A stretch of 64,000 nucleotides of DNA from Octopus sinensis (GCF_006345805.1 NW_021831849.1:186001-250000), one strand, 5' to 3'. Positions 1 through 54,781 are shown, numbered from the stretch's first letter. Numbers and translations: made by a program. The notes: generated by a model from the sequence alone, not told the origin.

Positions 1-32
1 AACAAAATAAAGATTAGTCAAATTAAAAAAAA

Positions 33-1028
33 TCACCCCAAAATAAGCCCAAGTCCAAAATGATATTTTCCGGCCAAATGTGAAATCAAAGCAGAGAAAA
101 CAAGCGTGAAGGGCATGGGGGTCAGTCTCTTCTCCATAGTGGCTCCCACAGTATATTCCGTGTCGACAAGCCCTGGTCTAATCAGTACAAAAAACCTCTA
201 AAAACACAATCCGATTTTGGATCATCAAGTTGATACACAAAACACGTGCGCGAATCCTTTGATCTTACCGACGACTCATGAGTAAGACTAACAGCCAATT
301 TGTCAGTAAGCTGATTAAAATAGGACAACTGGAATGACCCAATGACAGGACTGAGGATACTGGCACAGTACCACGACGGTCCTTACATAAGAAAAAACAC
401 AAACCAGTATATCTAAGGGCAAATGATGGCATTAGAGAAGGAGCAGTACTGGAGAAAGGATATCGATAGAGCACTTCTACCCCTCCTGCAAGCCCTGCGT
501 ATAGTCTGACCATACATTGCCCAATAAGAGTGCCTCATTGTTAAAAAAGGGGACCAAACCTCTCCCATTGACCACATCCACGTCCCCAGCTGCAAGTGTG
601 AGGGAGTATAAGGGAGACCGATATTCCGCAGAGTATTGACATGTCAACCAACGGTGTTTTTCCACCAAAGCCATGAGACGGAGTCTGATAGAAGGGGTCA
701 ACTGGTGGATTATATTTGCTGTGAGGTCGCCAGAAGGAGACATCTCTCCAACTAATACGGGATATGCCTCGTTAGGTGATATCTGCTGAGTCCCCACATA
801 TGTTGACCCAAATTTATAGCCAGAGGATTTGCCACTGCTGAGGATAAATGAGTGGCTCAGTTGGAAATGACTGCTAAGTCCCTTGTTGGCAATTAATTTA
901 AATCCTTCAAATATATTTGGAGTGATTTCTGAATTAATAGGAAAATTTCAACCTTTATTCCTTCGGTTTATTTCCTCAAATGTACATGGACCGGCACTGA
1001 GATCAAAGTCTGAGTTACCACCTGACAT
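33..1028 (-). CDS. TOMM40: Mitochondrial outer membrane translocase channel Tom40 (4 introns of 23-26 nt)
   Basis: Spliced translation MSGGNSDFDLSAGPCTFEEINRRNK/EITPNIFEGFKLIANKGLSSHFQLSHS...GSTYVGTQQISPNEAYPVLVGEMSPSGDLTANIIHQL...GLVDTEYTVGATMEKRLTPMPFTL...FGLGLILG* matches Tom40 along its length. All introns are GT-AG. Confidence 0.93.
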
Positions 1029-1148
1029 ACACGTGATATTTAATACATTTATTATATATTAATTACATATAAATTATTAATTTTAAAAATAATTAGATAA
1101 TAAAAGACAAAAGTCGCTTTAAGAATGAATGTGAGTTTAGTGACTGTT

Positions 1149-1625
1149 TTACAAGTCCAACGACTCTGCCAGTCTCTGAATGTCATCGACACTCATAGAC
1201 TCAATTCTTCGGTCAATTTCCTTAAATAGCCAAACAGAGGCACCTTCTGAATGGCCGTGAACAGAGATAAATGTTTTTCTCGAGGGAATAAAAGAGGAAG
1301 AACTCGATTCAAATTCATTTCAAACCGATGGCGGGAATCTGGTGGAGTTTTTTCAAATAAAGTCACAATCCCGCCTTCTGTGATCCCCAGGGAATCAACT
1401 GTGGATGTTTCTTGTTGTTATATGACCAGAGAGTGGGAAAACCATGCATTATTGAGCCACGAAAGAGGAGTTTCTGATTTATAGGCGGAATATTGAGATT
1501 TTCTTCAATCCACTGCATTATTTCTCTCACAGAAGTGGACCCTTCTACCTAAGAAGTAGTCCTTGAAGGGTACTCACGTCAGCATCGACTGTGACACCTT
1601 TTACGTGGCGTATTTTGATTTTCAT
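1149..1625 (-). CDS. UBL4A: Ubiquitin-like protein UBL4A/Get5 (GET/BAG6 pathway), 3 tiny introns
   Basis: N-terminal ubiquitin fold (MKIKIRHVKG...SVREIMQWIEENLNIPPINQKLLFRGSIMH). C-terminal IESMSVDDIQRLAESLDL* resembles the UBL4A TUGS motif (LTLDDIERLA). Confidence 0.75.
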
Positions 1626-1771
1626 TGAATAGATAGGCTACAACTAATGGTAACCACATGAACCAACAAGACTTGACGTTTAAAATAAAATTTATTTAAT
1701 TATTTATCAGCAAAATATAATTAATTATTATTTTTAAAATATTAATTTTATTTATTAGAAATTAAAATTGT

Positions 1772-2121
1772 TTAATATTTTTTCCATGTGATTAGGCCAT
1801 ATCGAGGTTCTTTGATTCCGAATTGAGACGATGAAAACCGACCATAATCAATGCTTTCATAAATCCTCTGATTTTTGCTCGAATATGGATTACTACTAAA
1901 TAATTCAATTAGTATATACTATTTAGATTTCGTAAATATTTCATAATTTTTTTTGTTTTCAAAATTCATTCTATTCAGATGATTTCTACGTAGATACCAA
2001 TTTGAATCATTTGTATAAACTTCCCAAGGATATCTCCTCGGCTGTTTTTATTATTGTGATTCAGTACCGCTTTATATTGATAAGATATCAATTGCTCTTT
2101 AGAATATTTTGTCAAGTCCAT
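1772..2121 (-). CDS. Hypothetical ~100-aa basic protein, 2 tiny introns
   Basis: Removing two GT-AG introns (26 and 24 nt) gives a continuous ORF, MDLTKYSKEQLISYQYKAPRRYPWEVYTNDSNWYLRRNHL...GIKEPRYGLITWKKY*. No family recognised. Confidence 0.5.
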
Positions 2122-2282
2122 TTTGAATGTTTAAATAATTTCTATGGCTACTAAATCATCAAATAAAAATATATTTACTTTGATATTTTTAACTAATTTA
2201 TCCACTTTTATAAATAATTTTAAAATTATTTATTCTCATCACATTCAATAAAATATATAATTTCAAAATATTCCAAAGTTTG

Positions 2283-3563
2283 ATGAATAAAAACGAATTT
2301 CATTTCAATCATTTGATTCGCAAATTAAAAGACAGGGCAAAGAATTCATTTGCAATAAAAACACACATCAAGTATATTTATAGATATCATTATCTATTCA
2401 TAGAGATGCCCTGACTAGAATGATAGTACTGGAAAGTAATTATATTCAGGTAGCATAAATAAACAATTTACATTTTTTCAGGAAATGAGAGAAACGCTGA
2501 ATGATTTAAATTCGAAAATAAAAGAACCACAAAACCAGTTTCAATAATTTAAACTATTTTTAGATATTTTTCATTTTATATTGATTTACTTATGAAATCG
2601 ATAGAGGAAGAGTTGGTTTTTAAAGAACAGACAATTCAAATATTCGAAGAAAAACGTCAAAATATTAAAATGTTCCAGAAAAGTGACCAGAAAACTCAAA
2701 ATGGAGTATACAATAATTATATAATAGATTATTTCCTATTTGAGTGAACGACACAAAAAAATTATCAAAACACAAAAAGAAATTGCAGAATTTCCGACCC
2801 AGAATTCAAAATATGCTTCAATATTCAATAAAAATTCAGTAATTTATAAAATTAAAAATTATTTACAGAATTTTGTCACAACAGAAGCAATAAAAGAGAA
2901 CGAATTTTTATTTAAATGCAAAGAATTAAAGTTCGAAATTGATTCGTACAACTTAGAACTATCAAATATGCTAAATGTACTCAAAATATTTATAAATTAG
3001 AATTTTTTGAGACAAGATGAACATATTATAAACCTAGTTTATGAAATTATGGAAAATCAAGTTTGTCTGAGATCAGATATTATGAAAACAAATTCAACAT
3101 ATTTCCAACAAATGTCCACTGTATTGTGCATGTTAATAATAAGTTAATAAACGAACAAATATTAATGGATGGTTATGAAAATCTGATTTACTATGCAAAA
3201 AATGATTATAATTGTATTGCAAATAAAGTAAATTCTCATTCTTTATATTTAAGAAGTTGATATTTAATCCCACTACGATCGACAAGATTAATATGATGAC
3301 TCAAAAATGGATTTCTATCTACAATCAGTCGGCCGATAATTTGCGAAAAAAATCTTCTAATGTAATTTTTTTAGACATTTTTAGGACACATTTTCACCGG
3401 ATTTACACTTGAATAAAGTAAGGTGTTTACTAATATGTAGAATACGATAAACGTCTCAACAAAATTATTGAAATCCATGTCTTTTGATATCCGACATGAT
3501 AATTTAATTCGAGAAATTTTTGAGGATGATTATAAAGAAGAAATAAACTTAATTTATTTTTAA
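2283..3563 (+). CDS. Hypothetical helical/coiled-coil protein (~330 aa, about 9 tiny introns)
   Basis: Successive 22-32 nt GT-AG introns join the short ORFs at 2740-3000 and 3063-3260 into one frame from ATG 2283 to TAA 3561-3563. No family recognised. Confidence 0.5.
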
Positions 3564-3610
3564 ATTAATTTTAAATAAATTATTTAAAAAACTCTTCTTG
3601 TGGGTCAATA

Positions 3611-4813
3611 ATGATAATAGCACTGCATCTAGGTTTCCTATAACCTGACATTGCTAGGAGCTGGTTATTTCAACATCAATAAGATCCCCACCTACCAAAA
3701 AGTGGCCACAGAAGCCTGTCTTGCAGTAAACGTAATCTCTCAGTCAAGGCCATGCAAGATCTGACAAGTGGCTGTACTGCACTGAGTGCTGTAGAAAAGG
3801 CCATTTCTACATTAGAGAACTCCCCTGCCACCAATGCGGGCTATGGCTCGTCCTTGAACAGTGCAGGTGACGTAGAATGTGATGCTTCGATCATGTATTC
3901 CAAAAATCATCACTTTGGCTCTGTTTCCTGTGCTCAAAGTTAGTCTAATATTAACTGGAGACTGTTATAATCCCATTAGACTGGCAACTTCAATTATTAA
4001 GTTCCAGAAATCGAATATTTCATTAGATATTGTTGCCCCAATGTAGGTTTTTTGGTTCATATCAAGCTCCATTGCGGGTAGGGGGACATTTGATTGGGCA
4101 AAAACACAAAACATACCCACAGTACCAAATGCCTCACTAAAGACTGGTTATTTTATTTAAAAATATATTAGAAAAAAGTATATTCAGATTTAATAGAAAT
4201 AAAACTAATAAATACGTTATAATATTATATATATTTAAGACAAAGAATTGTGATCGACCAGAGGACACAGTTGGGGCAGTATGTCTTGACACCTACGGGG
4301 ACGTAGCAGCCGGATGTAGTACTGGTGGCCCAGAGTACAGAGTCCCTGGCCGAGTGAGCCATGCAAGTGTCTTTGGTGCGGGTTCCTGGGCGGAGGAAGG
4401 TCCTCAGGCCACAGTAGCCGTGTCCACTTCCGGGATGGGAGAGCAGTTGCTCACTTGCTCTTTAGCCCGGAAGAATGCTGAGTTCTGTTTTCGGCGAGGA
4501 TTCCGTGATTTTAATGCTGAAGCGGAATCGGAGTTTATTTGCTCGGAATTTATTGGGTCAAAATTTTCAAATTCGTGTCCTTATAAACTTGGCGGGAGTT
4601 TGGTTTTGATGAAAGATAGTGAAGAAAATGACGCGAAAATAGTTTGGGGACATTGTACAAAATCTATGCTGATTGCGTACATTTCGAGTTCTATGGTTGA
4701 ACCGACGGTGGTTTTTTGGTCACATTTATAAGGTTACTCTCTCTGATCTGCCTGATATGGAAATGGAAGGAAAGGGGGTCATTTCGAATGGAATATACGC
4801 GTCTTTGTGTTAA
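3611..4813 (+). CDS. TASP1: Taspase 1 (threonine aspartase, Ntn-hydrolase)
   Basis: MIIALHLGAGY; ENSPATNAGYGSSLNSAGDVECDASIM; autocleavage/nucleophile site ED|TVGAV; PGRVSHASVFGAGSWAE; AVSTSGMGEQL. About 7 introns of 22-25 nt. Confidence 0.92.
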
Positions 4814-4884: not shown

Positions 4885-5330
4885 CTCTTTTTCCCTCATT
4901 GTTCATATTATCTTCATATGAATGATTTGTTTTAAGAGGCTACTGGGTGAATTTATGTACTCAACAATCTACTCTCCAGTGTTTTCTTCAACACAACTGA
5001 CTGTATATAAGACAGAGTTCCGTCTTTAATAGCCAACTTTTAAATGTAGTTCTTAAAAAATATGGAAACGAGTCCGTCCCAAGTCAAAACCAGTGGAATT
5101 ATTTTCACTTGAGCGTCGTAGAGAATGGACAACTCCCCTGCCAATAGATCGTATTTATGGCATTTCTCGACCTGCTTCAGGCGGTCCTGGGAAGTTATTC
5201 CCACTTCAATGAGAGTAATTTAATTCTTAATTTTGTTGTACAAAAATATGTCAGGCTTGTTGCAGTGAATATTCGTGTCTAATTATTTGAGAATTGGCTT
5301 GTTTGACTATGCTTTTTCTGAGAAATTTAA
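4885..5330 (-). mobile_element. Degenerate 3' fragment of an RLE-type (R2 superfamily, R4/Dong-like) non-LTR retrotransposon, copy 1
   Basis: Minus-strand translation NKPDIFLYNKIKN*ITLIEVGITSQDRLKQVEKCHKYDLLAGELSILY...IIPLVLTWDG...YIQSVVLKKTLES. Same family as 8622-9494. Contains stops. Confidence 0.8.
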
Positions 5331-10042: not shown

Positions 10043-13000
10043 TTAATCATCTAATTGGCAAATCGCGGCAACACTTCGATTAATCCAATGATTGACTGGT
10101 TTATCATCAGAAATCGGAATTTCGAGAAATCTTACAAAATTTGTCGAATGTCCAGTTGTAGATAAGACACCCCTACGACTAGTTGTTTTGTAAATCGGGC
10201 ACGAATATTGAATTCTACTTTCCACGAAATCACTTTTCACCGGTTTCAGCCAAATCTTAAAACATATTTCTCAAATTAATAATACCACTGGCAACTGTTC
10301 ATATAGTACTCTTGGAAGTGATTCAGCCAAGGTCATAGTAGAAGCATCCCATCTAGCACCTTCTAGAAACAACCCCTTGAATAATCTAGAGAAAATTCTC
10401 AAACATTGATCAAAGCTCCGTCCTCGGGCTTGGACAAACATTCTTGACTTTCTGAGGTGAACTGGAACACGTATTTAATCAAATCGATGGATATTCTGTA
10501 TTTTCGGGCATAATTTTGGCTAACTCCTAAACTTGTGAACATGGTAAAGGCATACCTGTGAGGAAGGACTGTGTAAAGTAAAATCCAGACAACCAAAATA
10601 TTGTTGGCGGTCCATTTTCAATCCAATTTTCAAAAAAGTGCAGTCTGAGTGTTAGATAATGTGTCAAACCGATCAAGAAGGTCGTTTATATAACTTCCCA
10701 AAGGTTTCAGTGAAGGATAAGATTTCGATAGCCAGGCTGAAGGGACTTTTCCAATAAGCAGTGAATCAAATATTCCCTCCAATTCTTGAGACATTACAAC
10801 AAATCCTTTGATTGCCTTGCATAAAATTCCAAGAGATGTGGATATAGTCGATGTGAGAGAGTTGTAGCGAATCAGTTCTTGTCGAAGAACAGTGTTCATT
10901 GACTCGTTGTATAGAACTGGATATGTCAATGAGACTCTTCCAATGTTGAACTCATTTGGCAATTTGCTCAAAATATCTGTCGCCAAGTCCATCACAGCCT
11001 CATTGGCGGATTTGTCCTTATTACTAGATTCCCCGGGCTGTGTCGACAAGAATTTCATCAAAAGCTACATATAAGGGTTTAACGACCTTACAGTCTGACT
11101 TTCGTGATAATCTTTGGTAATGTTAGCATTATTATGTAGACCAAATACATCGGTGCTGTATGTTGTCGGAAGGTTTTTGATATATGAGATATAGTTGTCG
11201 TAGTTCCCATCAGCAAGAGTGTGATAATCCCCGCTTGTTGATAGACTGCAGTAATGTATTATATATAAACCAATATTCCTCTGACTCAATCAGTTTGTAG
11301 TTAAAGAAATTGCCTAGTAAAGAAAGTAGTAGTCTTCTGTCTTTATCATCAGTCACTCTCCCTCCATAGTTACACTCCCCTGTAAGGTACACAAGTGCGT
11401 CCAGAGGGACATTATCGTAGTCGTTGATTAGCATCTAAAATAACACTTCTTAATAACCCGCATTTGTCGTGAGCTTATCACAAGGTCTGAATCGTTAAAT
11501 TCGTAAGGAATGTTCCATCCAAGCGAGCCAAATTGTTTTCTTTCTTGAACAACAGTGTGAAAAAAGCACAACCCGAATAACATCCGATGGAATTTATCAG
11601 GCTAAATTATACTCAAATAGTTGAACTTTGTCACAATCGTTATAAAATCCGGCTTCGTTGAAGGGACTACTTAAATATGATCTGAGGAGATTAGAACGAA
11701 GTCCGCTGGGAGGTTCGTTTGTGATTTTAATTCCATTTTGTAAGATGCTTACGGGAAAGTGCTCTGAAGGATAACTTGTCAGCCACAGTCGGAAATCAGG
11801 GTGAATTTGTCCGGGAATCATGACCTTAAATTATATTAGAGCTGAGAATGGATTACTTCCTGGCATATTCTATCTAAATTTGGCATCCAGCTGGTAGCCA
11901 AGTGACAATTTTGGAGTATAACCCAATCCCCCACTTTAATGGCTTCGTCAATCATTTTGGCTGCAATAACTCCCTAAAAATAAATCATTTAAATATATAA
12001 ACTTGTCCCTGTCCAAGTGAAATGCTATGTATATTTGTCGACTGTTTATATCCAAGTTCCATTCCAAATTTGAGAAGGGAGTGCAGAGGGTCTGCTCCAG
12101 GCGACAATATAAATATGAGCGGAGTTGTGGATGCAGAATCGGCAAAAATTGACTTCAAATCAAACGTTCCGGACTCAATAAATTTATTTCCAAGGTTATT
12201 GATTATAAATTTTTGGATGGCGGGAATCAACTTGTCCCCACGGAGACATCGAAGAATAACAAGAAATTCCAGTTCAGTGCAATCTTTGTATGGCTCTGGC
12301 AGTGGACTGTTTTGAGGATCTTGCAGTTCATAAAATGATTTCCATTTTTCTCCCTCTTGGCGAATAGCTACAAATGTAATTTATTTAATCAATACAGTCA
12401 GGAAACTGACTTAGTTGATCAATATCTCCCGCTCGTACAATTTCTCCCCATGACTTATCTGAAAGCCAACCCTTTTCAGGATTCTCTTGTAAGTTATCAA
12501 GTGCGACTCCTCCAGTCAGGAAAAATCTCCACAAAGTGTCGTCAATTTTATTTCTTGGATAAATTATAATATTATACCGTCCTTTGAGGATTCCAATGCA
12601 GAGCATAAAAGAGAAAAGCAATTTATCTTTCTCAAACAGAGATCGGCACACATTAGCATATATTGACTCTGTGAAATGAGAAGTAATCAGCTCGATTCGT
12701 TTGTCGATGAAATCCGACTTTTTGCTGGTCTCAATAGCCTGGAAATACATTTTTAAAAACAACTTGAATATAAAAATTTATGAACCAATGAAGGGAATAT
12801 TGGTACATAGGATCTATAAAGGCCAAATCAGAAATGCAGAAGAAGAGGACTGTTGAATGCTTAGATACTGGAACATAGAGATTCCTTGTTTTATCAATTT
12901 CATCTTCTGTTTTTGAAGCAATTTCTTGTTTTGCTGCAATTTCTTCAGATAAAATTTTTGAGGACGAGAGTATTTCAATTGCAGTTTCATCCTCGAGAAT

Positions 13001-16000
13001 ATTGGCCTTAAAATATCAAACAAAAAATTTACTTTCGAAGTTGTCAAAACCTGTAAAATTTTATCCTCTATTTCCTTGAGCTGCTTTTTATTTTCAGCTC
13101 CCTCAATGATTAAACTGTTCTTTTTTTCTTCAAATTCAGGTTTTTCTTTGGCAGCGACAATTCCCAATAACTGATCCTCTAATCCTTGCTCGGTGATCAT
13201 AAAGTTGATGAGACAAATCTTGACTGATACTTCCGGCAAATAGTGAGGGTTTCTGAGGTTGGTCGTAATGTACAGACGGAAATCCTGATTGTATTCTATT
13301 GACTTGTCCCCCAGCTTAATATAGTCCACTCCTTGTTGTCTGAATATTTGCTTCATCAGAATTGGGTCCAGCAAAGGATCGAGTTCTTCGCCAACATTTT
13401 CAATTAAAATCGGCTTTCCGAATTGAATACAATTTTCCATATGTTGAAGGTATTTTTTGTCAGTTAATTTGACGACACAAAGACCATTGTCTTTCTCGAA
13501 ATTTTTGATCCATTTATTGGCCTGCCCTAAAAAATGTTATTTTTTCAAACCCAACCTTGAGGGTCGATTATTAATGGCCAACGTAGAGAATTTTTAATTA
13601 TAATTCCATTATCAGTACTGAAAGTGTCCACTGGGAGTCCGCATATTTGCCATCTACGAATAAGGACATTATCTCCAAGTATGTTAGTCATTGAAAAATT
13701 TTGTGAACAAGGAATCTGTTTGTCAAGACACAGACTGTGCCAATCGTTTATAACAGTCTAAAATTTTTAATATATTGTTACCTTTCTGTAATAAGTAGAG
13801 AACGCCCCCAAATAAGAAATGACCCCAGCAGAGACCAAAACATCTCCAGGCACGTCATTATAAAGATTTTTTAATGTTTTCACCATATCTTGCCATCTTT
13901 CCCTTTCTCCTCCTAATCCCCCAATCAGCTTCCCTGCTCTTGTCAGCTTTTTGGAACATTGATCAATGTTTTCAATAAGGTTTTCCTTTTTGATAGTCAT
14001 CTCTTCAAGCTGGTCGTTTAATTTCTGTAATTTATCCTCGACCTAATCAATAAGTGGGTTAGATAAGACTGTTTTTAGTTGCAGTTCTTTTTCCTGCAAT
14101 GTTTTGATCTGGACAGCAAGTTTAGCCTCAGCAATGGCTAATTTTTCTTTTTTGGGGGCCACGACTTTTGAGACTCGATCATAAGAATCCATTGCTCTGA
14201 CCCAGGCACAAAGACCTTCACATGCAGTTGAGGCTTGTTTGACAATGCCAGGGACAAATTGTGGATCGGGGATATATTTTTCTCTTATTTTTCGAATACT
14301 GTTGGGATTTATGTCGTCCTTGTCAAAAGATTTTAGCCGATCGATGAATTTCATGTCGTTAAGAACTTTTTGTGATGAACTCCAATAGTCGTCAATCATT
14401 CTTCCACTACCACTGGGGTCTGGCTTTCTTTCCGGCTTGACGTTGAGCATCACACATATGGCCTCCATTACAACTTTTATAATCAGAGGTGGATTCTAAA
14501 TATAACTTTTAAATGAATTTTTCCTTCATCGATTTAACGTTTGTAATATCAGATGGCTTTAAGGTATCCAAAGCCGCCAAGGCAGCTTCAAGTTGAGGAA
14601 GAGCCTCAGCCAAATCTGTCTCGCATTCATCTTTGATGGCTTTTGATGCCATTGCTGCCTCATTTGCAATAGCCTTATCAGAGGAAACAATCTGCACTTT
14701 AGGAAAATGATCAAAACTTGTCTTTTGGCATCAACTTCTACAGTATCCTCCTCAATCCTGACAATAAGTAATTCGGTTTCTTTCGAGGTTTCTATAAGCT
14801 GAGGTTGCATTTCAGTCAATTCTTGCTGCATTTGAACAACCTGAAATTATGACGACAAGCAATACTTGTAATGAAGCATCACTTAATTTTTCTAAACCAG
14901 TCATGTAACGGTTTTTGAGGGTTTCAATCTCTTTACGTTTGAATTTTAGTAAAGATTTGAATGTAGATACTAACTCTAGATAGGACGTGGGGGTAACATA
15001 GTAGTGTCTTTTCATTTCATTAAAATATCTAGTTTATTATTTTATTCGCTCTACCTGGCTGATAAGGTTATGATATCACTGTGGAACTGCTTACAAGTTG
15101 TAACAATTCCATGTCTATAACTTTCGTCTAAATTAATGTCCTCAAAAAATTTATTCGCCACCATTTCTAATGCATCGTCAGGCCAAGTCTAGAAATAACT
15201 TTTTGGAAAAATAAACCTGAAACCAGTCAATAGTGCAACAATTTATAAGAGATGGAAACATTCTTAATCGATTTCGGAAGGAGGCACCAATTGGACTCAT
15301 TGCCAGAACTATATGAAGATTTTTCTTCACTCTATCAATAAAACAGTTGTATAAAATTAATGGAGTGGGGTCATTTTTCCGATTCTAAATTTTAGAGAAG
15401 TCAAGGTACCTCCGCTTTGAAAATTGATTGCATTTTTTCTAAAATTTCGGCTTTTTCGTCAGGTTGGAATAGATTTGGAAGATCGCCTGAATTGAGTATC
15501 ATTCCAATATCTTCCATAAAGCTCTCTTCTTTAATTTCAATGTCACTGAACAAAAATACGATTGGTTTTCCATCGATTCCAGCTTTAAACAAGAGCTAAA
15601 AATGTTGTCACATAGAAACTTTTTTCATATCTTCGCGCCAATCTGTTATTGAATAAAATCGCGTCATTTCGACTTGGAAAATAGAATAGTCTGCAATATA
15701 GGCGGCCATTTTAGCAACAGACTTTCTCCCACTGCCACCAACTCCTAAATGTATTCAAAAAACTAGAAACTAACCAACTAATAGACAATGACCGTTGTCA
15801 ATATTTAATACGCGAGATACTCTTGAAATGTGTTCGATTGCAAATTTAAACATGACAAGATTCATAGGATTTTTGCTCATTTGATTATATTCCAGCAAAT
15901 GACTACAATTTAATCAGATATGACACTTTTCCATCATTCTAGTAAGTTCTGTTAAATCTGACATTTCATTATAAGAACCCTCTTCATCCATTTTTTTAAA

Positions 16001-19000
16001 ATTACCAAAAATCAAATTTCTAACATGTTGATCTTTCACACGACCGTCAGCAGAAAAATGTCCAAGAAGCTTATCAACATTTGTCTTGAAGTGTGATTGA
16101 CAGCTTTTACGGACTATTCCAAAAAAATTATCCCTATCAGGCTAAACACTAGTCACTCTACCGATCCTCGTCGTCAATTAGCCTGTCATAGAAAACCCGA
16201 TATATTTCATGTATCCACAACTTTAACAGTTTTTCTGAACAGTCCAAATTTTTAGAGGGTAGGAGTAAGACTCCTGACATTACTCGAGCAAAGTCTCTTA
16301 AGTTAAACACGTAGTGACTTTTTTTCGGCGTTGGCAAAAAATTTTGTATGCAAAAATCATATACCTCCATGGTAGCCAGCACTAAAGTCTGAAAAATAAT
16401 CAAAGTTTTCAGACCTTTCCCATTTTTGAATAAATTTTATCAAATGAACTTTCGAAATGAAAATCGGAAATGGTAGTAAAAATTTTTTGTAGCGTATTTT
16501 TTGCAAACGAATCAATTCCGATAACATTGAAATGTCTCATCATTCGGGGACTAATGTCGTTCCGTCCTCCACCAGGGGGCGCCATTGCAGCGACCAAGTT
16601 CTATTTTATTAAAAAAATAGTTAACAATGTCCGTTAAATTGATGACAGAAGTGTCACGTCTATCATACCAGTGCTGATGGTCGATCCACTGGCGAATCAA
16701 CTCTATCGGTGATTGGGCTCCATATTTTTCTTTAGAAGGCATATTTAAATCGTCGATGAATACGACACATTTTTTCCCCATTGGTGGGCCGTAGAGACCT
16801 TTCCGACGTCTGTTATAAATAATTAGAATTTAAAAACCTTTCTAGTTTAGACATTATCATGTCCTGAGTCTGATTTACTGAAGTTCTGGCAGAAAAATTA
16901 ATAATATTTTGTGTATATTTGTCACTCGAGAGATGACTGATGTAGTCTATAGTTATTGCTGATTTTCCAGTCCCAGTTGGTCCAATAAACAGCACTGGAA
17001 TATTATGTTTTAAAAAAGTGTTCAAAAAAAAGTTTTGCCGAACAGTTTCAACGGTGATAATAATTGCGTCGTTAATCTAGTTGAATTAGTATGTCTTACT
17101 TTTGTTTTGGGGTCTAATATTTGGTTTCGTGGAACCAAAGATTCCCATTCGACCCAATTGCCACTTGCCTTTTTCTCAAAATAATAATCATAGATCATTC
17201 CCGATATTGGAAAAGTGTTATTCTGTCTTTAAATACAGTAGACTAACCTTGGTAAGCTTACTGCTCTTAGGTTTTGGATGTTGAGAGTTCGTTCCAGATA
17301 TTAGTTGTCGAAAGTAAGCGTCGAATTTTATTTTACTTTCGCTTTCAATTATACTTCCAATAACCCAAACAAAAGAAAATAAAAATATTCCTTGAATCCA
17401 AAGTGTAATCTACAAATTATCATTCAAGTTATTAGCCTGTTGTTTTGTTAAACTTTCTTCAATGTCGTCATTTATTTCGTCCATCATCGATAATATCAGA
17501 CGTTGTAAAGTGGACACAAGGTGCATTTCAGAAAAATGAAAGACCAGTTTACAATTCTTTTTTATAAAAAGTAGGCATGGATCGATCAGCCATTCGAACA
17601 TGTCTTGAAGCATTTCTTTAATTTCAACAGTCACTGATTTAGGTAGGTAATAGCATATCCAACTTTTCTAGGCATATAATCCATTTCAGAGACAAAACCA
17701 AAAGTGGCCGCCACCCCAACAAGACAGGTTCAATATATATCATTCCACAACGGGAAACGGTGGCAGGAGAAGCTTGCTCAAGGTCAGCAGGTTCAAAAAT
17801 AATATTCATCATGTTATTCATTTGAATAATTTCCCCACTCATTAAACAAAGCTAAAAATTAGAATACGCTAGCTAATAACTTTTTTGTTATCGTCGAGTA
17901 CTGTGTTCATATTCTCAATCCAAACTGCGTCTACAGGCCCGTCGAATATTATCCATTTTCTTTCATTCGTTCTCGAAGATGCATATTCTCTAAATTTGTT
18001 TGCCAAGACGCCTATAAATCATAGTTTAAACGCCACCATCGTTCCATTCTCGCGAAACTGGGTCAAATTGACCATATAGTTCGCCCATCGTAAGTGCCTT
18101 TGGGTTTATAATTGTATATATCGTCTTGAATTCATCCATTATACCAGATGAGCTTAAATTTGACAGAGTCGAAGCCAATATTTGATATGCCTGAGTCTTG
18201 CCTCCCATTGGCTCACCAATGATCATCAGTCCGTGACGAACGAGAATCATTTCATAGATCTGTGTCCTTAAAAAATATTTTTACCTGCATTATTTTTTTG
18301 ATAAAAGAGTCGGTAGGCTGTAGTTTTTTGATTTCTATATTTTCTATTAAAGCCTGTTGGAGATTTGGATATGACATTTGAGGACATTCGATTCCTGGGA
18401 ATAAATCTGACATGATTCCTTCAAAAAGTGGAATATCCTAAAATGATTTAAATTTGACAACCTGCTTTAAGAATTTGGGCATATTCACGTTTTCAATTGC
18501 CTTAAAAACCAACAAAGCTTCGTCGTCTTCTGGGTATTTCATTTTTAAACTGGAAGCAGATGTCAACACAGACTTGACTGCTCTCATTCCATAGTCGTAG
18601 TGGTGTTGGGATGAGAGCTGTTCAGAACAAAGTTGGTAGACTGCCACAATTTTTGTAGCGAGTCTATAAAATTGCCAAATAAATCTTACTCTCTGGCTCT
18701 AACGAACCCCATCGAATATAAACTGATTTCCGCAATAAGAGCATAGTCAGGCACCATCATTGCTACAGTTCTGAACAAGACCTATAACAGAATAATATTT
18801 TTACTATAACTTTAAGGTTGTCTGGAAGTTCCTGTCTTCCTGCGTACCCAGGATTCATTGTAATAAACATGTTGCATGTACGGTCAAGATGCAATTCGGT
18901 CCCTTCGAATATAAATATGCTTTGATCAGCGGCAATCGCCAACTGAATGCACATTATTTGTTGAGCCACTACAGACAACACCTGTTGGATAAAAAATGGT

Positions 19001-22000
19001 TAATACCTCAATTTCAATCCTATTAAATTCGTCAAAACACGCCCATGCTCCTGATTGAGCAAGTCCTTTAAAAAATTTTCCCATTGCTTTGTAATCAAGC
19101 CCATCAGAACAGTTGAACACAACGCACTACATTTATTCGTATATATATACTTGCTTAGCAACAGCCTTAGCCAAATCTTTACATGTTTCTGTCTTACCAG
19201 TCCCTGCTGGGCCCTCGGGAGCACCGCCAAGATTGAGTTTTAGAGCTCCCATTAAAGTCCTGCGAAACTAAGGTCACTTTAAACCTGTAACATCGGTCAG
19301 TCAAAGGCGTGATCACAAGACGGGGACTATTTCCAAGGTACTCATAACCATAGTTTATATCAGTCGTAATTTGCGATACTAAGACATTATCTTCCTTCCA
19401 ATAATAGCGGAGTTGAGCCAGCCATTGAAAATCTGATATAGATGACACTTTTTCTCTAACAAATTGATCAACAATGTCACGTCCTTTTTATATTAAAATA
19501 AATTCTTGCCATGTACGTCGAGGACTATTAGGGCTCCTAATGCTATTCTTGCAGCCCCGCTTATGTTTCCACGTACCAAAGTAACAATCTCTTCAATTTG
19601 TGCGTTATTTAGTTCAAGAAATTCCTGAAATGATTCGAAAATGTACTTTCATTTGGTTCTCTTTTATTGCTTCTACAACTCCAAGCCCCCAATAAATTTG
19701 ACTCACAGCCAAAATGACTTGCCCAGGCCACGAAACGACCCAATTTATTCTCGATGTCGACAGATAGGCCTTTAGAGAGCAAATTATTGAATTTCGAACG
19801 CTGCGAATCATTTCATCTTCTAACTGAAGGAGCCATTTTTCAACCATCCCCTAACATTGTAGTTTGTTTCAAAACTTTTGCTTTTGCGGGTTGTATTTTT
19901 CGTGTAAGTAAAATTTTTTCATTTTCGCTAGAAAGTATGGAAAGTATTTCATTCTCAGAATTGAATTCCAGTTTGTTAATGCCTTCGAAACATTTTTTTA
20001 AATGTGGTTCAACGCGTGTAGGGTCTTTGGTTTCCGACAAAATCTCCAGCAATTCGTCATTTGACAAGAAAAAAAATCTATTTTCTCAATTTAAATCATA
20101 CCTGGGAAAGGACAGCCGTTTCTTTTCCAAATAAGCATTTAGGCCGTGGTGAATTTCATCAAGCAAATTGTTTGACTCCTTGAGTTTATCGAGCATGCCT
20201 TCTTGATCTGTGGAGGCGAGACAGTGAACATCTTTCACGGCTTCTCTCATAATTTGACGCCAATTTGTATCAACGATAGAAAATTTTTGACTTTCATTAG
20301 GCATCTGGGCCATTATGTCCTCGGAGCTAAAAATAGGTTCAAGATAAAGCCAGGTCGCTTGACACTGTGAGGTATAATTAAACAAAATCAAACTTTGGTC
20401 CATTCATCAATAATATCCTGCATTGAAATGAGTTTAGTTTCCCAATTTTTGGCTTCTGTTTGAATTGGCTTTATATATGACGATCCCATCATTGTCTGGG
20501 CCTTCATAATATGGTCGTCTAGTAATGACTGAACATCGTCGAAGCCTCCTAGTATGCTGATGCCCTATACATTGCTTTCATGTTCATAATCAACCGAATC
20601 TCTATATGGGATAAAGTTGAAGACCACGTCGTTCCATTCAGACTTCATTTTTTCGAGACTTTTGACTAGAGAGTGTTCTTTGGTGGCAATTCCACTTATT
20701 TCCTCCAATGTGGTTATGTGTTTCATTAAATCATTTTCCAGCATTAAGGCTAGTGAGGAACCTTCTTTTGGAGATAAATATGTACCAACAACATCACTAA
20801 GCTATTTAAAATATCTTTGCAAGATTATGAAACTTGATTCCAATGTCTTTCTTGGAGACCTGGATTGCAAATTACGTGCATTAGTGGCAAAATATTCTTG
20901 AATTTCTCAATTTTAGATTTAATGCTTTCTGTAACACGAAGAGGTCCTTTCATTTCGGCAAATACTTTAGTCAATTTGTGAACGCTACGCCACATTTCGT
21001 CAACCTGTTCTTCCACGTCTTCCGAATTTAGTCCAACGAAAGAATCTGCATGACTCCAAATGAAATCCATACCGTACATCCACGAATTGCTCTTTGTGTT
21101 AAAATTGGAGACAATATTCCATAAAATATTAAATGGCTCGAGAGTTTTTTCTGCCTCGGTGAGAACTTCGAATGTAGTAGGTTCGAAATCCAGGCAGATC
21201 TCTTCCTGGTTTAGTTCTTCCATTTCTTTGTTAGCGAGATTCAATCTTTCTTTCAAAGAGATCAGTTTCTCGACATTATTTTTTATTTCTTCAAAACTCA
21301 TGATCTTAATTGTTATCTGAAGAAAAAAGTAAAACTTCTTTTTTTCTAAATTTTGCAATTTCTGACAACAATCCTCGCAATTTCAGTTGGAATTCCTTAA
21401 TTTTTACGAGTAAATCTTCTTCGGCTTTTTTACGAGCGGCACTTAATCGTGTTGCCGAAATATCAAATAAAAGTGAAATTCGGTCAAGCCATCCAAAAAC
21501 AGTATTAGTCAATTTAATATCCTCCCCTTTTAAACATTTAAAGCAAGTTTAAACTTTGTAATATAGCAAAATCCAGCAGGAATTTTAATCTTTCTGCAGC
21601 CTCTTGAATCTCACGTTTAATGTCAAATAATAACGATTCTTGTGCCTGGACATTATTTAATTTAGTAAACCTCTGTATGAAAGTTGATTTGTTCAATCAA
21701 TTCGTTTTTGTTTTGGGGATTTTGTGATAATCTCTCAGCAATGTTGTCAAATTGACGACATATTCTGTTTCATATATTAGAATTGATATATACGATCTGT
21801 TATGCACTCTATTTTTCTCGAGTTGAAAGTTTATCAGAATTTGACACAAATTTAAAGAAGAGTCGTGCATGGATTCATTCATTTTAGATGCGTCGAGGAA
21901 AAACATGTTTAGAGGAGCCGTTATTCTCATCAGCGATATCGAATCACAAATATCTTTATATTTGTTGTATTTCTTAACATTTAAACAATTTTTATTTACC

Positions 22001-23990
22001 AAAGTGAAGGTCTCAATAGAATGCTTCCCTTCAATAAACAAGTTTGCCTCTGCTTCCATAGTTCCATCAATAAGACTACCCAGCTCGTTGTAAATAACTA
22101 AATAACTGAGGAATATGATTTATTTGAGCTTAACTTTTTTAGACCAGGAAGATTTTTTTCAAAAATACACATGCAATCGTCGACATAACCAAGGACTTGT
22201 TCATCATTTACGTTTACTGGTTTTAAAAACATGGGACACGATTCAAGTTGAGAAAAAAGCTGAGTCTCCACCTTAAATATGAATTTGAAAAAAACAAATA
22301 CTCTCTTAACATTTCGACTACGTTCCACAATTTCATTAATACAGTTCAAAATACATTCCCTAGTCTGGTCGAGAGATGGTTGAAATTGTACTTGATTCTG
22401 TTCAAGAATCAAGTCAATCTTTATTATTGAATTTTGAGTATACATAATCTCATCAAAGTCCCCAATATAGTTGTTTCCGTTCTATAATTTTGAATGACGT
22501 AAAAATAACTTTAAACTCGTCAAGGACATTTCTGAAATCTGACAGCGTTTCAATGACCATTTCTCGCAATTGGAAGGACATTGTCGCTTCTACGCAATTA
22601 AAAAATAGTTGGATCAATGAAATGGGTCGAGTTTTGCTATATTTTGATACAAGACATTTCCAAGTATTTTTTAGATCGGTGACTATCTTAGCACAGTCCA
22701 AAACCCATCTGAGCAAGTATTTTCTATCAATTATTACTTTTCGTTTAAAAGATTCCAAGTAGTATTACATTTCTCTTTCACTAAGGCTACAAACTCTAAC
22801 GGCGACGGTTTAACTTTGAGAGAATTAAATTCTGAAATATCCACAAATCTCAATTTCTTGTATCTAAGAGATTGCTATGGAAATGGAAACTCTTTATGCC
22901 ATAAATTTTTTATCTCTAAAATGACTGGATGGGAAGTGAATATTTCGGCGGTACAAGTTTCTTTATTTATTCGATAACTGTCGTGCCAAGGAATTGGAGC
23001 TCTAATGATTCTAAACGAACGTAGAATGATTTATTCTTGCTTTAAATCGTAGCTTTCTATCGTTCCACTTATGCAAAGTCTTGTCCGTTCTTGGTTATCC
23101 ATAAGAATATAGTCAACTAAAATAAAACATATTTTCCTTAGAACCAATCGATTTTTTCAATCCAGAATAATAAGATTCAACTACTTCTTCCCATATCTCA
23201 TCAAATCCCCTTTTTAATAGTTTTGCTGGGATTAGTTTGATGATTTTGCTTTTAGTAGTCTCCGTGATATCAGTCAGGATTACATCACTGATTCCATTTG
23301 TGATGTAATAATTGTATCTCTTGTTGATTAAGAGTCAAATATAATACTTCCAAATTCTTTTCTTCATTTATTTGATCAGTCTGGTGTGTCCTTACGATAC
23401 TCTTCAACTGAGAGAGTGGAGACCTTGGAAGACAGAGTTCTTGTCTTCTAAATGATATTAATGACGTTATAACTTTTTTTTATTTGAAACATTTTTTTCT
23501 TTATTTTTGAGTTTTGCTATTTGGGAATTTATCAAAAATAAGTATACGAAGTCTGGATGGTCTTATTACCGCACGTTTAAGTCTTTTTACAGTCAAATCA
23601 GAAGCTTGGAGTGAAAAATTATTTCCAATTGTTTCACTGGGAGTTTTGCAGTATTTTTCCTCTTTCTGTGGTGCCGCCTTTGTCCAACACGTGTTCCGAA
23701 ATATTGGAGGATGTTGAATGTTTTTCAGAACAGACTATTAAATATTATAAATGAGAATAACTAGATATAGTTCAGAAAATTTTGTCTCTTTTTCTGGTAG
23801 TGGGGGAGCTCCTGGCAGTTTTTTTATTAGTTGTTTGATTTCTTCTAAATTTGGAACCTGTGTAGCATCGAAGTTACGTAATTAAATTACCTCGACAAAT
23901 TTTAAAGAACTTTGTTCAATTGGCATGTTTTGAATTTTATCATCTAAATTTAAAAGTTGAAAATAAACTTTCATTATTGCCAATTTCCAT
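10043..23990 (-). CDS. DNAH3: Axonemal inner-arm dynein heavy chain, DNAH3 orthologue (~4,000 aa, about 68 introns of 22-33 nt)
   Basis: The whole gene was walked exon by exon. P1 [18 protein letters not shown]2 [11 protein letters not shown]3 [11 protein letters not shown]4 GVGGSGRKS, stalk/MTBD, C-terminal STTGHSTNF...[16 protein letters not shown]-terminal [17 protein letters not shown]...[15 protein letters not shown] and IRAPIPW are DNAH3-type motifs. Confidence 0.95.
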
Positions 23991-24367
23991 TTTAGAGTTG
24001 CTATGTTACAAATGGTTTATTAGATTTTGGTTAAACATCATTAAAATCGACAATTCGAAAAAAATCGACAATTTTCTTAATTTACAAATGTTTTAAAACC
24101 CTCATTTGTGTAACCTTACTAATCAAAGCCTTGATTGCTTATATTTTCAATTTCACTTTTAGAATAAAGCTAGTCATTTAGGCTTTCAGAAATTTTTATT
24201 TTTGCTTTGTGGCTATTTGAGACAGTGTCCCGGGAATAATTTTGAGATTATTTAATTCATTTTAAAAACTTTTTAGAGACCATTTTGATGTTAATTTTAG
24301 TGATCTACATGAAGAATCTACTACTATCAGTTGAGACACATTATATTAACGACACTGATGCCACTCT

Positions 24368-24432
24368 GTCTGTCGACGTGGGTCACCTTCTCGCGGTGGC
24401 AGATGATAGTTTTATACTACGAAAAGACCCAC
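24368..24432 (+). ncRNA. HDV-like self-cleaving ribozyme (nested double pseudoknot)
   Basis: P1 gtctgtc (24368-74) / ggcagat (24398-404) with G1.U wobble; P2 gtgggtc (24378-84) / gacccac (24426-32); P3 acc/ggt; L3 ttctcgc; P1.1 UC/GA; P4 tagt-tttat-acta; catalytic C at 24420 in J4/2 cgaaaa. Confidence 0.9.
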
Positions 24433-24519
24433 AACTACTCCCATGTCGGATCGGATCAATTCCGCAACGTCGGTGGCAGCAGAGCAGGCGCGAAGCCGTT
24501 GCTCCCAAGGACCTCTTTG

Positions 24520-24573
24520 CTTATCAAACTCGCCGTTCTTCTTTCCGGAGACATTGAACCAAATCCTGGCCCC
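24520..24573 (+). other. 2A-like StopGo ribosomal skipping peptide
   Basis: LLIKLAVLLSGDIEPNPG|P fits the D(V/I)ExNPGP consensus (24550-24573), in frame and directly before the APE domain. Confidence 0.88.
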
Positions 24574-26992
24574 AGCAAGAAGAACCTATTTCGTATCTTG
24601 CAGATCAACATCAATGGGGTTGCTCAGAAGACTGCTGAACTTTATTCCTTCTTGGAGAAGCACGACGTAGACATTGCTTTGGTGCAAGAAACGAAGCTCT
24701 CGACCAAAAATCGCTTGCCAGACCAGGCTCTGTAAATAGGGGTGGCCTACTAACTCTTATCAAAAAATCCATCCTGTTCACTAACTGTACCTCCCAAGCT
24801 TACTCGCTAATTGACAACAATCCAGTGATTGAAATGACAGCTATAACTGTTTCTACAGGGTCATCAACCAGGAGATATATACATACCTCCTCACTCGTTA
24901 TGTCCTCATGGATGGACCTCTTCTATTCAAAATTTCCAGTCCCTCAACAATGTCATTGATATGAACGCAAAGAGCCCGATATGGCTAAAAAATCAATCGC
25001 TTAACTCAAGAGGATCTCTACTATTCGACCAATTTGATGGGTTAGTTATCCTCAACAACCCCTCATCTTACACCAGAACACCGTCAAGGAAAGGCGACGC
25101 AATTTCTTCTCCTGACATCTCGCTGTGTACTCCAATTCTGGCCCCTGTTACTTTTTGGAAGGTCATTTACGACATAAATTTTAATCACAATCCGATTATT
25201 ATTGAGAATGCCCTAAAATCCAACATCGACATTCAACTGCGTTGTTATACAAATTACAAAGGAGCTTCCTGGGACGACTACCGTCTCGCTCTAGAAAAAT
25301 AATTGAATGATTTCGACATTATCAACTTTCGTTCGACTGACGCAGCAGTCAATTATCTCAATGTCATTTCCACCTCCAAAAAATTCATTCCTCAAGGAAT
25401 TATACAAAATTTCTCCCAAAGTTACAGCCACGTTTCGATCGATGTCTCAAAGGCGTCCCTCGGTGTGGACTCATCAACAAAATTTTAAAGACAGACCTAA
25501 ACTCAAACCTCAAATCCTTGCAAACTTCTTATCGGGTCGAATGAGATACGTCTCTCTTATGGACCACTGTTCAAAACAACGATATCTTCCAAATGGAGTA
25601 CCACAGGGTTCTGTGTTGTCTTCTTTCCTGTTCAACTTATAATTACATGACTTTCCGGTTAATGATCCAAACAACTTGACATTATCTTACGCAGATTACA
25701 TATCAGGCTCTCTCAACATCCAGCAACAATTATACTCCGTTGAGAATTGGTTCATTGAAAACAGACTTGAGGCTTTGCCCTCGAAATCATTACGCCCTTT
25801 ATTAAGTTATGCGAGTCCAAGCTGGGCGCCCTGCCTATCCACAAACTCGACAATGGCACTTCAATCAGTACAAAACAAGGCCATGCGCACAATATCTGGG
25901 TGTCTGAAATCAACCCCAATTGATAACCTCCACTGTGAAACAAACCTTTTGCCAATTTATGATCATCTAAATATGAGAGGAACGCAATTTTTATTTGCAT
26001 CTCGAATTCCCTATCATCCATGTTCTGCTCTAAATGTGCTAAACGGAAATTCTCGTTCAATGAAGAACACGCCGGCGAATCTATATTCCCGGATCCTTGC
26101 CAAAATGGACATTCGATCTCCCCCTTTTGTCCCATTTGCGAGCACACAACTGCCCATCTATTCCGCTGTTCTGGTCTTCTTTCGCTCCGTAAAAATTTGT
26201 CATTCACTCCCCGGAGGTCCAATAGGAGCAACCTGGGAGGGCGCTGTTGTTTCTGCAAGCTGCTGGTCTCATAACTTAATGTGAGATCGGGGTTATGGAA
26301 CAACAACAACTCTATGGTATTTTATCTACTAGGTATTTGTTGAATTTTGACACTGTATTAAAAATATCGATTATAGATTGATATTAAAAATGGAATACAC
26401 CAAGCTATACTGTATAGATGGGGACAAGGCTAATAACTTCTATAAATAAAGTTGAGTTTACTGGAGCATAAAATATCGTACTTGACAGTCAAGTACAGAA
26501 CAGCTTGACATCTAATTATTTTACTTTGATGAAAACAATTAAAAAATTGAATTTTATATATTGATCTAGATCACAGAGAACAATCACCCGATTCCCTTAT
26601 CAGTTAGATGTCGAACTACATTTAGATTTATTTAATCAACAACAAATATTAATAATATTTACCAAGTTCAGGTAGTACCCTGTAAAACTGAAATCACCCT
26701 ATGAGAATTAACGAGTGATAACCTGGGAACAAAATACTCTGAGCTTAAGCAAATCACACTCGACGTGAGTGAAAAATTTGAAATAAGCAACAGAAACCAC
26801 GTTTGTAATTAAGTGCCCATAATATCATTGTGTGCTAGAGCAGACTAATCATTTACTATCAGACAAGTGCGCCATTATAATAGTTTAATAGACTAGAATC
26901 GTAAATCATTAATGTCATTAGTCTGCGCAGATAGACGTCGAAACAATCGAATATTATAATTTTTCACTGTAATTTAGTGGAATTATCGTTGG

Positions 26993-28505
26993 ATGCTGTT
27001 TGTTTTTGTGTTCTGCTCATTTTTTGTTAAATCTGATGACCAATGTGAATCTGTGAGGATCCCAATTTGCAAATCAATCGGATTTAACTTGACTTATCTT
27101 CCAAACAGTTTTGGACAATCGACACAAGAGGAGATTATGGACAGAATTGCAACAATTTCTGATCTTTTGCAGTCAAATTGTTCTCCTTTTACAATTGAAT
27201 TTGTATGCTCTACATTTGCGCCAATTTGTAGCAAACAAGTATACTTTCTTAAAATATTTCTAGCACGGAAAGATCTTTATTCTCTATCCATGCCAGTCTT
27301 TGTGTCATAAAGTATATTCTGATTGTACTACAACTATTTCCCGTCTAAATTTTGACTGGGACAAATATTTTAGCTGTGAAAAGTTCAAAACACAAAACGA
27401 AGCACTTTGTATTCATAATGATCATCTAACTTCAACAAAAAAAATTTCCGAACCACCAAATCTAAGCAATTGCCCCAATACTACAATACAAGTCCAGACA
27501 GAGTGGGGATTGAAGTGTCTCAATCCATGTCCTGCATCTTTAAAAAATTATTATTTTGATATTTCTAGAAGAGTTTTGCTTGGATTCTCGTTTTGTTGTT
27601 TTATTCTTTGCCTTTTCTCTCTGATTGGACTCTACATTAAACAAAACCGACTTGAATATCCAGAAAAGCCGATGATATTCGTTATCTCCTCTTCAATGCT
27701 ATATTCTTTATTTTTTTCTATTATATTGTCCATGGCAAACAGATTCCTGTTCTGCAGATTAAACGAAAAAGGACTTTACTATGATTCCTTAAGCAGTACT
27801 CAGTGCATCGTAATTTATGGTGTTCAGCAGTTTTTTGCAGCTGCTTCCCACATGTGGATTCTGGTACTAGCAGTGTCTTGGTTCCTGTCATGTTCGCAGA
27901 AATGGGGACAGGAAAGCATAAGCAAATGGACAAATTTATTTCATTTTTCTGGTTGGTTTATTCCGGCTATTCACGCCGGGACTGGGGCTTCCACAAAAAT
28001 GTTGTCTACAAATTCTCTATCGGGGATGTGTCAAGTTGATGAAGGTACTCAAGTCGGATTTTTGTATGCTTGTCTTCCCTATTTTATGATTTCCTTTGCA
28101 ACTGTGCTCCTTCTATCTTTGGGAAATAGAGATTTAAAAAAAACTAAAAAGCAACTACTTGGAAGTGGTTTAAATATTAACAATTTGTCGAGAATTCTTG
28201 TGAAATTTACAATGTTTACCTTTTTTTATGCAACCATGTCTGCATTTGCGATTATTTTGAAAATAATTTACTTTTTCCCAAAAACTATTTTTGGAAGTGA
28301 TTCCGATCAGTTGGAAGAAAGGTCATTTTATTTTTTGATCCCTTGTATTGAGATTTTGATTAATTTTGTCATCGGAATTGTCTCCTCGCTTTGGCTATGC
28401 AGTCCTCTTTGTCTCGTAACTATATACTATAAAATCAGAATTTACATGGCTAAAAAATCTCGTCCGTCTTTATACTTTTACTCTAATTCTCACAGAAGCA
28501 TCTGA
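26993..28505 (+). CDS. FZD: Divergent Frizzled-family receptor (CRD + 7TM), one 25-nt intron
   Basis: Signal peptide; CRD CESVRIPICKSIGFNLTYLPN...FVCSTFAPIC...PCQSLCHKVYSDC; YPEKPMIF; WILVLAVSWFL...KWGQESI; FHFSGWFIP; SLSGMC. Confidence 0.88.
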
Positions 28506-34388: not shown

Positions 34389-35843
<1,455 letters not shown>

Positions 35844-53889: not shown

Positions 53890-54781
53890 TTATACGGGAA
53901 ACTCACTGAGTCCTTTTCGTAGACCCTCTGAGTAAGCATCGTCCCATAGTTTAAAAAATTCCTCATTCCGGCCAAACTGGGGATGCATGTCCCAAGGCTT
54001 GGAAGGACCAATAAAGTGGACGACTCTCACCAAACTCCGATTTCTAATATTTGAGATATTTTGATTCGACTGTCTGAGAGCGGGTGAATAGCTGTAAATA
54101 GAAAGAGCGGGAGTATTGTAGACGAAGGGGATCCTTCGACTATTTGAAAGGGACCAATCTGCGAAAAACGCGTTGAGTAATCCTTGGTCGGCTCCTAAAA
54201 TTAATTTTTGATAAAAAACCGTCAAAGCTTCCAAATTCGTTAGCAAAAGACACAAGATTGTGAAATGTTTCCAAAGAGGGTTGAAAAACAAAGACTCCGC
54301 TGTTGAAGTAATCAGGCCACCCCACATCTGGACACGCACTGAGTTCGTCATATTCGAATAAATCGTCAATATTTTTCAAAATCTATTTTTGCGGTTTATA
54401 ACGTGTAAAAACCAAAGTATCTGCATCCATGAACACACATTTTTTGAATTCGGTCAATTTCCAACAAAATATTTTTGAAAATGTGACTCCGAGTTCAGGT
54501 CTATTAAGTAATCCCAGGTTTTGCTCATCTCCGCTATTGAATTCTTCGATTATGACAATTTTATCAAACAGTATTTTGAGTTTGTTACTATTTTTTAATA
54601 CTTTAGGGATTACGTCATATTTTCAGTTACGTTGTTAGAAATCATTGCGACTATTTGTTTCTGAGTCTGAACGTTTCTGAGAGATTGAGCGAGGGCTATG
54701 CATCCCTTCGCATATGAATCATTGGTGGCGAGGGTAACAAAGGCTTCTAAAATTTTAACTGCGCATGCAATAAAAACCCAT
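53890..54781 (-). CDS. GYG1: Glycogenin (GT8)
   Basis: [16 protein letters not shown]; [11 protein letters not shown]; CVFMDADTL; [19 protein letters not shown]; [11 protein letters not shown]; IYSYSPA; [11 protein letters not shown]. Confidence 0.93.

Follow-up and report, generated by a model that had tools for sequence, protein, structure and literature searches.

A candidate 28-nt GA-AG micro-intron in an inner-arm dynein heavy chain gene from a very likely dicyemid genome

Results

The window, which denotes here the whole stretch of 64,000 nucleotides that was analysed, carries a gene for an inner-arm axonemal dynein heavy chain on its minus strand, together with other conserved genes and a number of transposon remnants (Table 1). 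Among the remnants, the Tc5/pogo-type DDE_1 transposase is split between two ORFs and a hAT dimerisation domain can be recognised; the presence of such remnants around genes is consistent with a genome that is repeat-rich but gene-compact. Three ORF fragments, at 5043-5219 (-), 30089-30490 (-) and 40175-40327 (+), share the peptide ..(V/L)(L/M)TWDG.V...FK.Y... and probably represent the remains of a single family of repeated elements; the fragment at 30089-30490 has no Pfam match. Long overlapping ORFs occupy both strands immediately upstream of the dynein gene, and the two that were scanned likewise gave no Pfam match. A search of the window against Rfam returned no snRNA or other RNA family.

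Table 1. Coordinates of the features discussed, counted from the first nucleotide of the window.
Feature	Coordinates	Strand	Remarks
Eukaryotic porin	1-950	-	Extends past the left edge of the window
Inner-arm axonemal dynein heavy chain (DNAH3/7-like)	10043..24016	-	Conserved part 21337..10046, 49 anchored introns; N-terminal tail and start codon approximate
Intron after the downstream exon	14069..14043	-	Anchored junction set
Downstream exon, microtubule-binding domain region	14070..14495	-	HMM match 2636-2779, 208 bits
Focal micro-intron	14496..14523	-	Sequence reading; best excision in dinucleotide-blind scan; length and composition typical
Upstream exon, stalk coiled-coil CC1, ends ...DITNVKSMK (AAG)	14524..14691	-	HMM match 2578-2636; gapless DNAH3 alignment
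Nearest upstream GT, possible cryptic donor	14537..14538	-	43-nt intron, in-frame VKSMK loss; 23.7 bits worse
GT-AG intron upstream of the CC1 exon	14717..14692	-	Anchored junction set
Probable GC-AG intron, 27 nt	17410..17436	-	Junction 17: best AG-ending excision; removes in-frame TAG
GC-AG intron, 26 nt, catg/GCAAGAATTT...AAAAAG/gacg	19484..19509	-	Junction 6: no GT-AG possible; GC-AG ties best
Transposon remnants	24400-26320	both	Tc5/pogo-type DDE_1, hAT (all three remnant rows together)
Transposon remnants	29212-29619	-	
Transposon remnants	48752-50226	+	
Frizzled-family receptor	26978-28502	+	
Beta-tubulin, complete	34390..35842	+	4 introns, 32, 29, 27, 29 nt, all GT-AG
DDX47-like helicase	38536-39800	+	3 anchored introns, all GT-AG
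RPA1	44603-46414	-	5 anchored introns, all GT-AG
SMU1	50777-52156	-	3 anchored introns, all GT-AG
Glycogenin	intron 54070..54044	-	4 anchored introns, all GT-AG
Ets-domain factor	56954-57999	+	Preceding exon resembles pointed/SAM-like by eye

The GC content of the window is about 34% overall (about 28-40% per 2 kb), and its exons use the standard genetic code, long exons being free of in-frame TAA and TAG. The presence of an axonemal dynein points to a ciliated organism. This dynein has its best matches, flatworm sequences among them, at 55-65% identity, and the protein database contained no near-identical protein, its best match being 65% identical. Among animals, comparably short introns have been reported for myxobolid myxozoans and Dicyema japonicum only (PMC13644364), those of Dicyema measuring 26.2 +/- 1.9 nt (PMC2222250), and the genome of D. 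japonicum, a ciliated animal, has 36.7% GC and 49% repeats (PMC6736024). The splice-site logos of D. japonicum are reduced to GTa at the 5' end and AG at the 3' end (PMC13644364), with which the position matrix derived from the window agrees. Taken together, the intron size of about 26 nt, the GC content, the standard code and the combination of animal and ciliary genes make a dicyemid very likely as the source of the window.

The dynein gene was modelled on a profile built from nine full-length dynein homologues, on which 50 exon segments of the minus strand fall in collinear order (profile positions 643-3963, window 21337..10046). With 49 introns removed, 3,330 codons (3,330 aa) remain, free of internal stops and ending at the stop codon 10045..10043. 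The spliced product matches as a single HMM domain (profile positions 653-3963, 5,040 bits) and is 51% identical to its best full-length homologue. The full motor domain is present, with its AAA P-loops, stalk and microtubule-binding domain, and the P-loops of AAA1 and AAA3 are kept as GPAGTGKT and GPTGTGKS. For the unconserved N-terminal tail (about 24016..21337), GT-AG introns alone suffice to connect the exons. The open frame, the single domain, the P-loops and the joinable tail all argue against a decaying pseudogene, and by the evidence of its sequence this is an intact, functional inner-arm dynein gene. The initial annotation had named it DNAH3, which agrees with our assignment to the DNAH3/7/12 group of inner-arm axonemal heavy chains, DNAH3 being the best solved relative.

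To place the introns, all in-frame, stop-free excisions of 10-150 nt were scored at each of the 49 junctions against the local sub-profile, with terminal dinucleotides ignored. At 40 junctions a GT-AG excision of 22-32 nt equals the best score or comes within about 1 bit of it, while at junctions 5, 18, 24 and 40 the GT-AG solution lies 2-5.4 bits under biologically implausible solutions of 13-22 nt or without a terminal AG. The final set of 49 anchored junctions contains 46 GT-AG, 2 GC-AG and 1 GA-AG introns. Their lengths range from 22 to 32 nt (mean 26.6, SD 2.4), and no intron of the tail model exceeds 33 nt.

The two GC-AG introns suggest that some variation at +2 is tolerated in this gene. 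The donor at 19509 has a strong neighbourhood, ATG/GCAAGA. At junction 17 the best GT-AG option would be 63 nt long and scores 19.4 bits below the best excision; this region is variable, which makes the assignment less secure. The unconserved tail may hold a third GC-AG intron, at 23040..23011 (-), and the introns at 19509 and 23040 share the 5' start GCAAGAAT. The proportion of GC-AG introns, 2/49, is above the animal average of roughly 1%, in numbers too small for significance. A naive longest-ORF splice model yields four extra non-GT donors (23502, 21697, 19503, 17424): 19503 and 17424 both prove to be GC-AG; 21697 disappears in the correct frame, which contains two GT-AG introns and shows a weak HMM match and an I.ERL..P...EL motif; and 23502 falls in the unconserved tail, for which a GT-AG-only path is available.

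Junction 32 is the single case among the 49 with neither GT nor GC near the best score. Re-reading the minus strand from 14523 to 14496 gives GAAAAATTCATTTAAAAGTTATATTTAG, flanked by ...TCG ATG AAG on the 5' side and AAT CCA CCT on the 3' side; across the site the strand reads acgttaaatcgatgaag/gaaaaattcatttaaaagttatatttag/aatccacct, the middle piece being 28 nt long. Without splicing the frame continues as AAG GAA AAA TTC ATT TAA and ends there in a stop. The sequence, the boundaries and the stop are as the initial annotation had described them, and its proposal that a 28-nt GA-AG excision restores a conserved VKSMKNPP motif is also confirmed. This excision joins ...ATGAAG to AATCCACC (spliced junction ...TCGATGAAG/AATCCACCT) and, at 150.8 bits, is the best of 1,472 in-frame excisions. 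The resulting peptide aligns gaplessly across the junction with human DNAH3 (8j07_g3, residues 2734-2933, E=1.1e-75; DISLVKSMQNPPGPVKLVME), and equally with 9fqr_Xx and DNAH7. The site is located in the stalk helix CC1, immediately ahead of the microtubule-binding domain.

The same mRNA would be produced from three registers (AG..TT, GG..TA and GA..AG), of which GA..AG alone combines a 5' G with a 3' AG. The genomic termini of the intron are then GA (14523-14522) and AG, and its donor is neither GT nor GC. It is a phase-0 intron of 86% A+T with a TTTAG 3' end; its removal restores frame and homology, and in its length (within 22-32 nt), its A+T richness and its 3' YAG it resembles the U2-type ultra-short class.

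Two in-frame, stop-free GT-AG excisions exist near the site and no others, one of 43 nt (14538..14496) and one of 76 nt. Compared with the 28-nt excision, the best GT-AG candidate, at 127.1 bits, loses 23.7 bits and the best GC-AG candidate 49.1 bits. The product of the 43-nt excision would read ...ACAAAC/AATCCACCT and lack VKSMK, in which 4-5 of the 5 residues match the homologues. The initial annotation had objected that this upstream GT, 15 nt from the focal donor, would create an intron longer than any other in the gene and delete VKSMK. Both objections are upheld by the lengths of the 49 anchored introns and of those in the tail model, the 43-nt intron being 6.8 SD over the mean of the gene. 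To yield a dynein with an intact stalk, the pre-mRNA would have to be cut between AAG and GAAAAA and rejoined at TTTAG/AAT, that is, to lose a non-canonical GA-AG intron. The homology comparison shows the 28-nt segment to be an intron whose GA-AG excision is needed for a predicted functional product.

Five other genes of the window contribute 19 anchored introns, each of them GT-AG, which brings the homology-anchored introns of the window to 68, with 65 GT, 2 GC and 1 GA donors. The weakest entries in this tally are the helicase junctions, which were judged by eye against what we take to be the motifs of DDX47. One RPA1 intron was set at 25 nt, not 19, which removes a 2-residue insertion. The beta-tubulin gene makes a handy internal standard for the intron class. 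In glycogenin, a 27-nt GT-AG intron (54044-54070, -) is in frame and stop-free; an ORF-based model retains it as coding sequence and so gains 9 residues that are spurious by comparison with human glycogenin-1. Introns of this kind will go unseen when the genes of this genome are called naively. The conserved window genes that were examined contained neither frameshifts nor premature stops, which argues against a sloppy assembly and for good local base accuracy.

A position matrix was calculated from the 60 other introns and contains little information beyond G+1, T+2 (94%), A/T+3, A-2 (67%), G-1 (52%) and a T-rich run before [TC]AG. Scored without positions +1 and +2, the focal donor context GAAG/G.AAAATTC reaches 4.27 bits, above 55 of the 60 others, and the focal acceptor context is above 43 of them; the A+T content is 86%, against 73 +/- 8% in the other introns. 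The donor reads AAG/GAAAAA and so carries an AG/GAA signature. AG/G.A recurs in ten of the 60 other introns and AAG/G.AA in one. The initial annotation had suggested that the AAG at the exon end could compensate for U1 pairing. The above-average context (AAG, with A at +3 and +4) is in keeping with this, and the pairing with U1 itself we infer; the neighbourhoods of both the GA donor and the GC donor at 19509 would fit compensation of this kind.

The position of the intron is not universal among animals. In an animal contig of 342 kb from an ENA metagenome assembly (L003, 601-987), the orthologous exon runs uninterrupted through gtgaaagcaatgaagaacccaccatca (VKAMKNPP), bounded by ..ttag/ and /gtaat and adjoined by an intron of about 60 nt. 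Three sequences grouped with it (L001, L002 and L004) also contain the orthologous dynein exon with no intron at VK(A/S)MK/NPP, and the exon-like ORFs P0043, P0052, P0056, P0057 and P0064 imply the same. As the position is absent from the orthologue of at least one other animal, it offers no cross-species evidence on the donor. An exact-protein look-up with the ORF of the downstream exon gave no match, and neither did two metagenome scans, one with the genomic donor carrying N at +2 and one with the spliced junction.

Discussion

We consider the site to be a genuine, functional U2-type GA-AG micro-intron in an intact inner-arm dynein gene, with a probability of about 0.6 on the sequence evidence. 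The 5' splice site of this lineage would carry little information past G+1, U+2 and A/U+3, and the focal site would retain A-2, G-1, G+1, A+3 and A+4 for pairing with U1. Being of ideal length, rich in A+T and terminated by TTTAG, the intron could then be defined by a normal spliceosome despite the mismatch at +2. The clean local assembly, together with an AG/GAA context that is found at about one sixth of the donors here and is typical of genuine GA-AG introns, favours a GA donor that is real and used. The RNA-supported GA-AG introns of Eurytemora affinis and Oikopleura dioica bear this same AG/GAA signature (PMC7072748).

It is unlikely, though simple to envisage, that the A at 14522 arose as an error of base calling or consensus, or represents a minor allele that the assembler picked, in what would truly be an ordinary GT-AG micro-intron. 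One T-to-A change at this position turns a canonical GTAAAA donor into the observed one, the rest of the intron is normal, and GT-AG is found in 65 of the 68 anchored introns; for the sole GA donor among them, a single error or variant is an equally simple explanation. The low local error rate implied by conserved genes free of frameshifts and premature stops makes a strike on one given base improbable a priori, whereas the fact that the intron was picked as an oddity pulls in the opposite direction, such selection enriching rare errors. The context also speaks against an error, AG/GAA being that of genuine GA-AG introns (PMC7072748) and common to 10/60 other donors of the window.

We give still less weight to the possibility that the A is real in the sequenced haplotype but impairs splicing, making the allele hypomorphic or null. 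The intron would then be retained, with its TAA stop, or the GT at 14538 would be used, and a second allele or copy would be functional. GA donors are generally poor splicing substrates, and in model systems splicing from a GA 5' splice site usually arrests once the first catalytic step is complete. Combined with the single occurrence and the selection of the site as an oddity, this favours either an error or a defective allele. A fallback product does exist, the 43-nt GT-AG alternative being in frame, but it would take 5 residues from CC1 and would presumably shift the heptad register beside the microtubule-binding domain, and a 43-nt intron is far beyond the 22-32 nt range. Dicyemid samples appear, from the sampling in PMC6736024, to be clonal populations or pools, from which a deleterious heterozygous variant can find its way into an assembly; the dynein gene, however, shows no signs of decay elsewhere, and on a splice-impaired reading the favourable AAG/GAA context would be a coincidence.

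The remaining readings, in which the segment is a U12-type intron, a site of translational bypass or frameshifting, or a germline sequence eliminated as in ciliates, are very improbable and effectively refuted by the sequence context: the eliminated sequences and introns of Paramecium are likewise typically 26-30 nt long, but there is no TA...TA pair at the required spacing, the exons follow the standard code, the window holds animal genes (Frizzled, Ets, SMU1) and sixty similar GT/GC-AG micro-introns around the focal one, no take-off and landing codons match, and neither the U12-type 5' box /[AG]TATCCTT (ATCCTT) nor the branch box TCCTTAAC occurs in GAAAAATTCATTTAAAAGTTATATTTAG. A nested, stwintron-like arrangement was also rejected, as its inner piece is non-canonical and its outer intron would be merely 11 nt long.

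The initial annotation had gone further and inferred a tolerance of GA donors in this spliceosome. Taken as a general property, such tolerance is not upheld, since the GA donor belongs to one of 68 anchored introns and the remaining departures from GT-AG are two GC-AG introns of the ordinary kind. In animal annotations the averages are 98.33% GT-AG, 0.98% GC-AG, 0.11% AT-AC and 0.58% others (PMC7072748, Table 1), and in long, exon-rich genes one non-canonical junction is frequent (PMC7072748). With about 65 exons in the gene, a lone non-canonical site is statistically unremarkable, and a set of 68 introns with one GA donor and two GC donors is compatible with an ordinary animal genome and does not establish lineage-wide tolerance of GA. 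We regard as doubtful the idea that dicyemids, with a 5' signal shrunk to about three bases, have relaxed position +2 (G[U/C/A]) and carry GA-AG micro-introns, and extra GC-AG ones, genome-wide; such a hidden class finds no support in this window. TopHat and AUGUSTUS are assumed to accept GT-AG, GC-AG and AT-AC junctions only, a matter on which PMC6736024 is silent, and an aligner and gene-finder limited in this way would presumably miss a GA-AG class systematically. GA donors are neither reported nor excluded by the D. japonicum pipeline that used these programs (PMC6736024) or by the published logos (PMC13644364).

If the GA donor is real and used, a spliceosome operating on introns of roughly 26 nt and a minimal 5' signal is able to pick the right phosphodiester bond without the near-invariant U at +2. 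Annotation confined to GT/GC-AG would then mis-model such genes, in this case giving a dynein minus five stalk residues, or a truncated one. A relaxed +2, if true, would add a third independent lineage to the animals that splice GA-AG introns routinely, and this lineage would be the first to combine such splicing with introns of <30 nt. Should the site prove to be an error or a defective allele, its value would be that of an assembly quality flag only.

Among known systems, GC-AG introns (about 1% of animal introns, PMC7072748) resemble the focal intron in combining a substitution at +2 with a good neighbouring match. They differ in that C at +2 is well tolerated, whereas A at +2 is much rarer and usually makes a poor substrate. 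The human FGFR GA 5' splice site, as cited in PMC7072748 (its reference 75), is likewise a GA donor in an otherwise GT-AG genome; at the focal donor the nearest upstream GT is 15 nt away. With the ultra-short introns of dicyemids and myxobolids (PMC2222250, PMC13644364, PMC6736024) the focal intron shares the 22-32 nt class, the A+T richness and the weak consensus, and with the dicyemid genome the window shares a GC content of about 34-37%, an abundance of transposon remnants, and animal and ciliary genes. The descriptions of dicyemid and myxobolid introns in these papers have a GT donor, in contrast to the focal site, and report no GA donor.

One copepod and Oikopleura have GA-AG introns in abundance, with sporadic cases in other organisms (PMC7072748), in agreement with what the initial annotation had said of their rarity and of their occurrence in these two groups. 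The GA-AG introns of E. affinis and O. dioica (PMC7072748; for larvacean splicing, PMC13326754) are alike to the focal intron in their 5' GA and 3' AG, the AG at the exon end and the A at +3, as well as in the precise interruption of conserved coding sequence and, presumably, in removal by the major spliceosome. In those species GA-AG introns make up several percent of all introns and are backed by RNA-seq, whereas here there is one in 68, predicted from the genomic sequence. The focal intron, at 28 nt, is also far shorter, and it belongs to the lineage of a spiralian parasite rather than to that of a copepod or tunicate. GA-AG introns as such are already known; if the present one is confirmed, the new setting would be a sub-30-nt intron in a spiralian parasite.
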